37,876 bases of DNA from Perkinsus chesapeaki ATCC PRA-425 (lineage: Eukaryota > Protista > Perkinsozoa). Positions 7,039 through 13,898 of the stretch are shown in pieces (positions within the stretch are counted from its first letter, which is position 1; every line of letters begins with the position of its first letter). The position numbers were made by a program, and so were the translations under genes. The stretch spans positions 1 to 37,876 of the forward strand of contig JAAPAO010000341.1 in NCBI GenBank assembly GCA_013115145.1. The letters are read 5' to 3'. The notes below the pieces were generated by a model, which was not told where the DNA came from, did not search any database, and saw nothing but the letters and a program-made list of their open reading frames with translations.

Positions 7039-8052
7039 ATATGAACTAAACAAACTGAAATGGATGGTTTACACTAGTGGGGTCTCTGTCATTTGATCAA
7101 CAAGCTACCGAAAATCACAGAAAAATGCCGGCTAAAAGCACATTTAACTAAAACAATTTCAGCATGGGACTATTGATGCGCACGCACCTTTATTATTCTA
7201 CAGAGTAATAAAATATTATGAACAGGAGAAGTGGAGAACATTTGTGATGCCAATTGTGATGAGCAGGATTATTAGGAGTCATTCCTTTTGCCAACTGGTA
7301 TAGTACACTGATGTGGTGATCGGAATGCGATCAGTTACAAAGTAAAACTTCGAGCAGTCGGGAGCTGCTGCGGAAGTAGGCAAAGTCGCTACAGAGCGCA
7401 ATAACAACACGCTATTACCGAGGCGATAATTTTTAAACTGATACGATTTCACATGCAGGGAAATTGGAGACCAGAGGTCATCCAGCGGTAGAAACGAAGA
7501 CAAGATGGAGGTAGAACCGCTAATATCTAATAATAATAGAAATATAATAATATAATAATAGAACCGCAGAATACATGCAACTGAATGAAAGTCGTCACTT
7601 CGGCTACTTATAGTTATTACTGAGAGAAGACTAGTTCCGAAAACGGGTCAGGTCAGCAGACAAAGAGAAATATAATTATGAGCTCTAGCGGGTAATACGA
7701 TGCTTCAATGAGCTCCAGAACACAAATCGTGCTACAACTCAACGAACTCAACGCTCCTGTTAGTAATTGACACCTTTCTTTATGGACATGTGAATCAACT
7801 GCCACTCTCTCTTAATTCAGCGAGGTGTTCGGGACGAGGAGGCCTCTGAAGGGAACGAAAGATCCAAACCATTGGTCTCCCTGAAAATTTTGCGACTTCA
7901 ACGAGCGCCTTCTACGAAAATGTTTCAAGTTTGGGAAGTTGCTTTTAAATTAGGTCGCGAAGGATTGTGAGGAGATGCAAGAACAACTAAGCTCGCGTTT
8001 TTTTATATTATTATTCGATTCTATTATTCAACTGACAAAGTAGTAAATAAGC

Positions 8053-9363
8053 CTATGTAACCACCCCATTAAGACATTCAATTATCGAAGTAACACTAAC
8101 AGTTCTCACCAGCGCAGAACGGCCGTTCGTTGGGTATCGACTCGCTTTCGATTTGTCTCCTCCCCAGGAGATTTCATTCCTCAATGTGCCCACTTTTCTG
8201 TCTTCCATATATCGCGACTTCACAGGTGGTTTGGCCTCCCGCTTCACTTTTTCCTTCCCGGGCATGACGTACCCGGCTTTGAAATCGTTCGGATCCCAAT
8301 CTGCCGGATTTGTTTCCGGACTAACGTCAAGCACAGGAATGGGTCGAACTTCCATTCGAGGCTTCTCCTCGCCGACATTTTCTTTCTTGGGCGGTTTCGA
8401 AACGGTTGATCGATTTGAGCGCGATGCATCAGTCTCAGCCGTGTCGAGACGGCTGATCACTTTATCGAGCTCATCATCGGACCGCTCACCAGCGGGCAGA
8501 CCGAACTCGGGTGGGTCGGAAGCTTCGCTGTCACGCGAACTGTGATATTTATTAAATCGATCAACCGTTTCTTTTTGTGACAGGTGGCGGTTTGCTGGGA
8601 GATTTTCCGGCACATCGTCATAATGAGCAAATCGATTAACCGTTTCATCTTTGCGTGTGTTGGTGTCACGAGGCATTCTGCTATACTCTATGAATCGATC
8701 AACCGTTTCATGGTTATCACTGCCACGTTCAGAGTCATATTCGTTGGGCTCCTCCATCAATCTTCGAGACCTGTCTTGCTCATCAGACCGTGGATCAACC
8801 CTTCCATCTCTCTCCATGCCTGTCATACTGTTATATCCACCACCAAATCGATCAACCGTTTCATCTCTCTCCATGCCTGTCATACTGTTATATCCACCAC
8901 CAAATCGATCAACCGTTTCATCTCTCTCCATGTCTGTCATACTGTTATATCCACCAAATCGATCAACCGTTTCATCTCTCTCCATGCCTGTCATACTGTT
9001 ATATCCACCACCGAATCGATCAACCGTTTCATAACTATCACTGTCATGTCCTGTCCTATCACTTCCAGCACATGTCACCACCCCATCCGATCTGACAGCC
9101 CATCTATCGTCTCGTCTCGCCAACCGTTGTTTCCTCCTCCTTAGCAATTCTATCTCTCTTTCAACCTCACCAACTCGTGAATGCAAATCTCGCTCGCCGC
9201 CCGATGAAACCGTAAGATATTTTTCGGTACAACTTTCAACCTCGTCTTCTTCCTCTTGATCATCGTAATCACCATTTATATCCGGTGTATGATAATCATT
9301 ATCCTGTTCGCCTAAGTGACATGAACAGGAGCATTGGCAACATTCGAAGCTTTCGTAGAACAT
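8053..9363 (-). CDS. Acidic low-complexity protein with ETVDRF repeats and a short coiled coil
   Basis: 436-aa ORF with Cys cluster CCQCSCSCH, an acidic tract, coiled coil EVEREIELLRRRKQRL and seven ETV(D/N)RF units. Extra 5' exons (to 9565) and 3' exons are possible but unproven. Confidence 0.75.
   Translation of the reverse strand: MFYESFECCQCSCSCHLGEQDNDYHTPDINGDYDDQEEEDEVESCTEKYLTVSSGGERDLHSRVGEVEREIELLRRRKQRLARRDDRWAVRSDGVVTCAGSDRTGHDSDSYETVDRFGGGYNSMTGMERDETVDRFGGYNSMTDMERDETVDRFGGGYNSMTGMERDETVDRFGGGYNSMTGMERDGRVDPRSDEQDRSRRLMEEPNEYDSERGSDNHETVDRFIEYSRMPRDTNTRKDETVNRFAHYDDVPENLPANRHLSQKETVDRFNKYHSSRDSEASDPPEFGLPAGERSDDELDKVISRLDTAETDASRSNRSTVSKPPKKENVGEEKPRMEVRPIPVLDVSPETNPADWDPNDFKAGYVMPGKEKVKREAKPPVKSRYMEDRKVGTLRNEISWGGDKSKASRYPTNGRSALVRTVSVTSIIECLNGVVT
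8788..9030. repeat. Coding tandem repeat, 54-57 bp period (ETVDRFGGGYNSMTGMERD)
   Basis: Unit starts at 8788 (degenerate), 8845, 8902, 8956 and 9013; spacings 57, 57, 54, 57. Confidence 0.95.
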
Positions 9364-10280
9364 TTATTCAATAATAACTGATAGCGAATCCAACTAATAT
9401 ACCAAATCGATCAGATGATCGATAACAAAAATCGATCAACCGTTTCACAATGCCCTCAGTCATCGCGCTAATTAAAAGCTCGCATTTGTTTTTTCTCAGG
9501 CGATTCAGCACGTAGTAGAATTCTGTTGAGTTGTTCTCTTTACTTGATTGCTCATGACTCGACATAAAAATTTAAAGCTATTTTTATTCCTGTAACTCCG
9601 CATTTCAGTTCGCAATGGACTGCAGTAGTAGCAAAGATGCCACTGCCATCTTTGCCATCATGGCAGCATTGGTTTGTTTAGTTGCCCCTGATGTGAGCTA
9701 TAATCCTATCATGATTCTTCAACTGACCCTTATGTGACATAATATTCAACTTATATCAGCACGCATGCACAAGGTGGTGGACCGTATAATGAAATATCAC
9801 TTCCAGCAAGTCACACAGGGACCGCAGATGTTCCCATTTTTTGCCCTATACCTCCACACGGCCGATCGACAGCGACCCCCCCTTCCGATAGTAACTCAAC
9901 AACAGCTTATCATCAACAACATAATAAAACATGCGACTATTGAGGATGTTGACTCCAATCAAGTTGGCTATGTACCACATACCGGTGCCTAAAGCAGCAA
10001 TCCAAGATGGACAGCTCATCCAACCTCATCATCAACCCACCGAAGCAGTTTATGCATATCCAACTCATTGCTGTACTTGGGCCGAGTGTCAAGGGTCTTC
10101 ACACTGTGCTGCTCATTAACATCGTTATCTGCCGCCCAAGGTGTCTTAACTTCATGTCGAGGAGCACCTGATCCATGGGACAATCTATCCACGCTTATGC
10201 CTTCAATGTTCATCGAATGTAGTTGTGGTCGTCATCGCCACGATACTGCAAGTATGATAAAGATAACTCATCTATCACAG

Positions 10281-10540
10281 GCGGGCCTATATTCCCTACG
10301 GTGGGCCTATATTCCCTACGGTGGGCCTATATTCCCTACGGCAGGCCNNNNNNNNNNNNNNNNNNNNNNNNNNNNNNNNNNNNNNNNNNNNNNNNNNNNN
10401 NNNNNNNNNNNNNNNNNNNNNNNNNNNNNNNNNNNNNNNNNNNGCCCTATATTCCCTACGGTGGGCCTATATTCCCTACGGTGGGCCTATATTCCCTACG
10501 GTGGGCCTATATTCCCTACGGTGGGCCTATATTCCCTAGG
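10281..10540. repeat. 20-bp minisatellite (GTGGGCCTATATTCCCTACG)n interrupted by an assembly gap
   Basis: Three units before and about five after the N run at 10348-10443. Confidence 0.97.
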
Positions 10541-13825: not shown

Positions 13826-13898
13826 TTCCGATACCGGGACTCGAACCCGGGTCGCCTGGGTGAAAGCCAGGTATCCTAACCAGCTAGACTATATCGGA
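13826..13898 (-). tRNA. tRNA-Glu: tRNA-Glu (anticodon TTC), intronless
   Basis: 73 nt: TCCGATATAGTCTAGCTGGTTAGGATACCTGGCTTTCACCCAGGCGACCCGGGTTCGAGTCCCGGTATCGGAA. Full cloverleaf with acceptor TCCGATA/TATCGGA, followed by a TTTT Pol III terminator. Confidence 0.97.

Follow-up and report, generated by a model that had tools for sequence, protein, structure and literature searches.

The subject of this analysis is a short DNA word, AAATCGATCAACCGTTTCAT, that recurs within and immediately upstream of a 436-aa open reading frame (ORF; positions 8053-9363, minus strand) in a 37,876-bp stretch of the genome of Perkinsus chesapeaki ATCC PRA-425 (contig JAAPAO010000341.1 of assembly GCA_013115145.1, positions 1 to 37,876; hereafter, the window). 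The results presented below support the view that this word is a unit at the level of DNA and not a motif of the peptide. Based on the comparison of its copies across the genome, the word probably functions as a docking site for a putative sequence-specific DNA-binding protein, with transposons accounting for part of its spread and with in-frame amplification in a disordered linker of the protein encoded by the ORF.

Genome-wide distribution and structure of the word

A first-pass annotation of the window, made from the sequence alone, described an 18-bp motif, AAATCGATCAACCGTTTC, and proposed that it was a unit of DNA and not of protein. A search of both strands of the 41.7-Mb assembly yields 275 matches to this 18-mer when a single mismatch is allowed, 139 of them forward and 136 reverse, and none to a control with the letters of the 18-mer reversed. 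The alignment of 84 distinct exact copies indicates that the true unit is 20 bp long, namely AAATCGATCAACCGTTTCAT, and ends with CAT (A in 89% and T in 86% of the copies); the exact 20-mer is found 99 times in the assembly. On both sides of these 20 bp, the information content is at the background level, and this holds for all 84 sampled copies as well as for the 49 solo copies discussed below. Most of the genomic copies are single rather than arrayed and are found in a mostly non-coding context, within short stop-free stretches and in no constant frame; by direct reading, the word can be translated without a stop in five of its six frames. A strong excess over the control, occurrence in both orientations and sharp boundaries are among the properties expected of a docking site (cis element), and all three are seen in the word.

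Rfam and tRNA scans of the motif loci detected no RNA gene at the word; in two of these loci (L004 and L022), tRNA genes are located ~1.4 kb from the copies of the word. A literature search for the word returned no relevant paper, and a metagenome scan for the exact 20-mer retrieved only two unrelated loci, which is the chance level. The codon-bias profile of coding potential around the word carries a signal too weak to be of use, and the profile of the mean ORF length shows only a shallow dip, upstream of the word.

The two halves of the word differ in their distribution. The left half, AAATCGATCA, occurs 853 times (compared with 43 occurrences of the control), and the right half is rarely present without the left one. 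The left half is also a component of a separate, dispersed 22-bp palindrome, AAATCGATCA-NN-TGATCGATTT, which contains a central CANNTG (mostly CACGTG), is embedded in unrelated flanks and genome-wide is represented by 185 sites with at most one mismatch, against none for the control (for example, L039:1065-1086, L042:977-998 and L045:1012-1033). The only match to this palindrome in the window, with two mismatches, is at 9404-9425 (+), 41-62 bp before the ATG of the 436-aa ORF; what had been taken for a partial copy of the 18-mer at position 9404 is instead this copy of a different word. The core of the 18-mer had been described as pseudo-palindromic as well. Self-complementarity is indeed present but is weak, with 5 of the 9 dyad pairs of the 18-mer matching (AATCGAT, CA and the complement of AAACGGT). 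A dimeric or two-part binder of the 18-mer is plausible because the left half is common to the word and to the true 22-bp palindrome, and the weak dyad fits such a binder. With this arrangement, AAATCGATCA would be the half-site that the word has in common with the palindrome, and the right half would be either a weaker inverted half-site (AAACGGT vs. AATCGAT) or the site of a partner protein.

The word within the gene for a predicted disordered protein

The window contains few long ORFs, and eukaryotic domains are present in it. The 436-aa ORF is a real gene. It is predicted to encode a disordered protein and is single-copy, a paralog search having found no second copy in the assembly; a Pfam search of its product found no family, and a protein-atlas search gave low-confidence structure matches only. 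Protein searches together with a full HMMER search recovered only two partial orthologs, the best of which is a partial protein of Perkinsus olseni (KAF4718019.1, 48% identity, which by itself points to a Perkinsus species other than P. olseni as the source of the window) and the other a more distant protein, P0002. The orthologs share the islands CCQC.C.CH, W..RSDG.VTCAGS, GERSD.ELD.VI and ETNPADW.PNDF, with variable linkers in between, and the ETVDRF units that are encoded by the word fall within one of these linkers. A 192-aa protein from a Logan assembly, P0005, contains repeats (KRDSSLDRLGGGYIMGA) that resemble, with an E value of 1.9e-6, the unit of the tandem array described below (DETVDRFGGGYNSMTGMER); the two proteins may be distantly related, or the repeats may match by chance.

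The window contains 9 matches to the 18-mer, compared with the expectation of 0.04, and none of 100 shuffled sequences reaches this number. The search recovered every position listed in the first-pass annotation, for exact and one-mismatch copies alike. Eight of the nine copies are inside the ORF. Seven of these are on the + strand, four of them exact (8554-8571, which reads ETVDRF, and the copies starting at 8845, 8902 and 8956) and three with a single mismatch (8629-8646, reading ETVNRF; 8692-8709, reading ETVDRF with a synonymous TTC; and 9013). As had been noticed before, all seven employ the same codons, GAA-ACG-GTT-(G/A)AT-CGA-TT(T/C), and so read ETV(D/N)RF, and the eighth, an exact inverted copy at 8399-8416 (-), 155 bp from a direct one, reads SNRSTVS (hereafter NRSTVS). 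The ninth copy is exact, is located at 9429-9446 (+), outside the ORF, and precedes the ATG at 9363 by 66-83 bp. Together with the palindrome, the eight exon copies and the 18-mer just before the ATG make up ten sites within 1.05 kb. An additional inverted look-alike at 8446-8463 (-), which matches the 18-mer at 14 of the 18 positions, is real by direct reading; it is part of ELDKVISRLDT, a peptide that is kept in all three orthologs, and it may be an old decayed copy, now fixed as a peptide, or a chance match (by estimate, ~0.01 would be expected per ORF).

The copies at 8845, 8902, 8956 and 9013 belong to a tandem array at 8793-9032 (+) that consists of 4.3 units of 57 bp (19 codons) with 94% matches and, being made of head-to-tail units of 10-100 bp, is a minisatellite; a decayed copy at 8788-8805 (+), which reads GRVDPR, ends the array. 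Four to five copies fall in this one array and hence are not independent. The copies at 8629 and 8692 are parts of old units (63/75 bp in the case of 8629). A common ETVDRF-xx(x)-Y pattern in the units at 8554, 8629 and 8692 and in those of the array indicates that all of these unit types arose through old tandem duplications, in frame, of 75, 63 and 57 bp. Comparison of the unit types with one another gives 94% identity for the 18-nt core, 39% and 29% for the 18 nt adjacent to it on the two sides and 26-28%, the random level, for the further flanks. Such a frozen core amid flanks of random-level identity cannot be explained by codon bias. In the long ORFs of the genome, ACG accounts for 19% of the Thr codons and CGA for 15% of the Arg codons, and the probability that ETVDRF is encoded by exactly these six codons is ~0.001 per copy.

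It could be argued that ETVDRF is a short linear motif repeated in a disordered protein, with identical codons that are due to recent duplication and genome-wide matches that are secondary. The common ETVDRF-xx-Y pattern of the units is compatible with this possibility, as are the peptides ETVDRF, ETADGLF and ETADRL of the orthologs (which fit constraint on the peptide or on the DNA alike) and the SLDRLGGGY repeats of similar design in the unrelated-looking P0005. However, this explanation is already largely refuted, and we consider it very unlikely. Only the 57-bp array is young, whereas the other units combine nearly identical cores with randomized flanks, such that the synonymous sites do not vary as the flanks do; the choice of codons is improbable in each copy; the inverted copy encodes a different peptide with the same letters; and the 275 genomic copies are mostly in non-coding DNA, in varying frames and, in some cases, in arrays with periods that are not multiples of 3 (see below).

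The partial P. olseni protein contains GETVDRFGQ ~40-50 aa before GERSDEELDKVI (GERSDxELDKVI) and GNRSTVSD ~10 residues after it, at the positions that correspond to the 8554 and 8399 copies, respectively, with a degenerate ETADGLF further up. The copy at 8554 is probably the one in common with P. olseni. The persistence in P. olseni of two unrelated peptides that derive from one word in opposite orientations would be best explained by constraint on the DNA.

The first-pass annotation also raised the possibility that the 18-mer was a locally propagating micro-element and pointed out that the copies at 8399 and 9429 form an inverted pair around a segment of ~1.05 kb. A segment bracketed in this way might be a mobile unit. 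The exactness of this 18-bp inverted pair and the dispersal of the word among unrelated flanks are what would be expected of a self-propagating element. However, direct reading of the pair reveals no target-site duplication, as the annotation itself had noted, and none is detected under any boundary tried; the bracketed unit is single-copy; the two copies point away from each other, the reverse of what is seen in the real transposon described below; and the NRSTVS reading of the 8399 copy is kept in P. olseni. Furthermore, the in-gene copies share one frame and the homology of old units, as is the case in tandem duplication in place. Propagation of the word as a mobile element in its own right accordingly seems highly improbable, and a meaning of the 8399/9429 pair as a bracket is not supported.

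Transposon-borne, solo and arrayed copies

Unforeseen by the first-pass annotation, roughly one in three of the exact copies sampled (26-31 of the 84) ride inside Tc1-like transposons and their miniature derivatives, where their internal position is fixed across two related families of repeats. Locus L038 (928-2504; G000:C2328:28727-30303) harbors a complete-looking 1.58-kb Tc1-like element of the inverted repeat/direct repeat (IR/DR) type, with perfect 214-bp inverted ends, each of which contains the 20-mer. Its ORF encodes the DDE_3 and HTH_Tnp_Tc3_2 domains, and an N-terminal piece is out of frame with it, owing either to a small intron or to a frameshift. In each inverted end, the direct repeat AAATAGAATAYTT is present twice, as an outer and an inner copy at a distance of 182 bp, and the word is located between the two, ~130 bp before the ATG that opens the Tc1-like N-terminus of the transposase. 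In both families, the 20-mer is followed, at ~20-25 bp, by a GC-rich palindrome, GGCGCGCGAAA...TTTCCGCGCGC, which resembles E2F sites (at L038:1085-1116 and in the family-A elements). A miniature element of 204 bp (L078:1383-1586) has 39-nt inverted ends and TA flanks. The elements in L038, L037 and L078 show the features that characterize Tc1/mariner IR/DR transposons and miniature inverted-repeat transposable elements (MITEs), namely TA-flanked inverted ends, a DDE transposase and inner and outer direct repeats. In the assembly, the two arm types have at least 43 and at least 35 matches, respectively, at 70-100% identity. The word is cargo of this transposon and of its miniature derivatives, and part of its spread is due to them; the transposon probably uses the word to drive or assist the expression of its own gene. 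Tc1-like TRT elements (PmTRT) have been reported in Perkinsus marinus (PMC5630946).

Retention of the word in the transposons was assessed with a query that comprised the 118 bp adjoining the word, the word itself being excluded. In this comparison, 13 other transposon copies reach the edge of the word at 74-81% identity, and 8 of the 13 contain the exact 18-mer, compared with the expected 1-11%. This result shows that constraint acts on the word in the transposon copies.

The 49 solo copies have unrelated flanks and keep all 20 bp, including the terminal AT. No target-site duplication was found at these copies under five choices of boundary, nor are any of the transposon words (the direct repeats, the end sequence or the GC palindrome) found near them. 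A TGACA trace of the family-A flank is detectable in 8 of the 49, compared with ~1 in controls, which suggests a continuum from the transposon copy to the solo word. The solo copies would be sites of the host or, alternatively, remnants of transposons that have lost everything but the word. In four loci (L021, L056, L071 and L085, near position 1501), the 20-mer, in either orientation, fills most of a plausible GT...AG intron of 34-40 nt, and these putative introns join open frames of 50 to 75 codons.

These observations bear on the possibility that the word belongs to the transposons only, acting as a promoter or enhancing transposition in the Tc1-like IR/DR family, with all other copies (solo, intronic and exonic) being neutral leftovers of old insertions without a role in the host and the exon copies deriving from one exonized relic via slippage. 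The fixed place of the word between the direct repeats in two diverged families, ~130 bp upstream of the transposase ATG, the dozens of transposon copies across a broad range of identity and the TGACA trace in some of the solo copies are all in line with such an origin. However, neutral decay does not give solo copies that lack the other transposon words yet keep all 20 bp with sharp edges. The core is also frozen between old in-gene units with flanks at the random level, and both the ETVDRF and the NRSTVS readings persist in P. olseni. Therefore we regard the restriction of the word's role to the transposons as unlikely.

Apart from the gene in the window, the word together with a short spacer is tandemly repeated in at least four loci: C1898 (L031:518-730), with a period of 35 and at least 6 units; C2857 (L034:995-1095), with a period of 32 and three units that run into a gap; C2962 (L035:893-1155), with a period of 26; and C250 (L033:1243-1347), with a period of 21, where the only open frame (120 aa) reads MKRLIDI repeats, not ETVDRF. 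The periods of 35, 32 and 26 are not multiples of 3, and therefore these arrays cannot be peptide repeats. What multiplies in the arrays is the DNA word, not the peptide. The original proposal of a DNA-level unit is thus borne out by the genomic census, the non-coding arrays and the frozen synonymous sites.

The arrays invite yet another explanation, under which the word is a recombination or replication-stalling site, or a gene-conversion tract, that homogenizes itself and breeds local tandem and inverted duplicates without any regulatory role. Such a hotspot could account for the unusually large number of copies in short arrays of varied period (21, 26, 32, 35 and 57 bp), for the proximity of the inverted copy in the gene to a direct one and for the letter-perfect copies at unlinked sites. 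However, we know of no mechanism that copies exactly 20 bp between unlinked sites, and most of the copies are single. Moreover, a hotspot would still require a protein that recognizes the word and in this respect overlaps with the docking-site explanation. On balance, a purely recombinogenic role appears quite unlikely.

Two other features of the window are a perfect 20-bp tandem repeat (unit GGGCCTATATTCCCTACGGT) at 10280-10538 that flanks an assembly gap of N on both sides, and a tRNA gene at 13826-13898 (minus strand; Rfam, 67 bits).

A putative docking site and its relation to known systems

Among the explanations considered in the first-pass annotation, a binding site that is tolerated in coding DNA fits the data best, and the word would most likely be a site of high affinity for a putative binder of the transcription-factor or architectural type. 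Several observations weigh against this reading. The word and the palindrome co-occur within 2 kb only modestly more often than expected (2-3 cases compared with ~0.5-1, from a cross-check of the match lists). The word might have been retained in the transposon copies through constraint that operates in transposon lineages while they are active, and not through selection in the host. The cross-species evidence is at the peptide level only: NRSTVS, which is kept along with ETVDRF in P. olseni, is one of several conserved patches in the ortholog alignment, and the more distant P0002 has ETADRL only and lacks the NRSTVS segment. Finally, solo copies are enriched neither next to ORF starts nor in introns according to crude ORF-based tests, which are weak in an intron-rich, unannotated genome. 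The distance to the ATG is -66 for the window copy and about -130 for the transposon copy, and the same tests reveal no positional excess.

With these reservations, a sequence of events that leads to the present state of the locus can be outlined. To judge from the peptides alone, one sense and one inverted in-gene copy would already have existed when this lineage and that of P. olseni separated. The sense copy would have been later multiplied by in-frame tandem duplications, with units of 75, 63 and 57 bp, inside the disordered linker, where the word is easily tolerated because five of its six reading frames are open. Constraint on the DNA would keep the core, and ETVDRF and NRSTVS would be incidental readings of it. 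The palindrome, the 18-mer before the ATG and the eight exon copies would together constitute a dense cluster of sites. A more far-reaching version of this scenario, which we put forward only tentatively and consider less than likely on the available sequences, is that the 5′ half of the gene serves a dual purpose as a homotypic cluster of nine or ten docking sites of very high affinity that have been held in both orientations since before the P. olseni split, with the peptides as by-products, and that the ~40-bit word could belong to a limited set of long, exact words that organize transcription or chromatin in Perkinsus.

To our knowledge, next to nothing has been established on the promoters and DNA-binding regulators of perkinsids and their dinoflagellate relatives or on the cis-regulatory elements of Perkinsus. 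With its 20 bp and its hundreds of letter-perfect copies, the word is ideally suited as bait for the purification of a protein that binds it. The locus is also a clean natural example of a DNA signal that dictates protein sequence, namely ETVDRF in one orientation and NRSTVS in the other, and it illustrates how a transposon-borne site and the in-frame growth of a minisatellite shape a disordered protein. Should the word turn out to be only transposon debris, the finding would be a curiosity.

In mammals, the 21-bp REST/NRSE (RE1) element and the CTCF sites have been spread by transposable elements. Like the word described here, these are long, information-rich composite words with half-site variants and hundreds of copies, some carried by transposons and others solo; the present case differs in its putative binder, in its perkinsid protist host, in being carried by a Tc1-like DNA transposon or MITE and in the array of sites located in a coding exon. 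The carrier itself resembles the Tc1-like TRT and Sleeping-Beauty-type IR/DR elements in its TA flanks, long inverted ends, outer and inner direct repeats and a transposase with DDE_3 and Tc3-type helix-turn-helix domains. In contrast to those elements, the 20-mer here is an extra word in the spacer, neither an end nor a direct repeat, and the window copies lie outside such elements: a BLAST comparison of positions 7800-10300 with all of the loci gave matches only around the word itself.

Exonic transcription factor sites (“duons”) and bacterial uptake-signal sequences are accommodated in coding DNA. In these systems, as with the word, a DNA signal constrains the codons and the peptide simply follows from the frame that is open, in varied frames and orientations. 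Here, however, up to eight copies are found in one exon and were amplified as a minisatellite, and both the function and the binder are putative. At the level of the letters, the word has the ATCGAT core in common with the Drosophila DRE (TATCGATA), the site of DREF, and with the CGATA sites of BEAF-32, although this is a resemblance only, as the word departs from the 8-bp DRE consensus (AATCGATC here). Similarly, the center of the companion palindrome matches the E-box, CANNTG, mostly in the form CACGTG, which again is a resemblance only.

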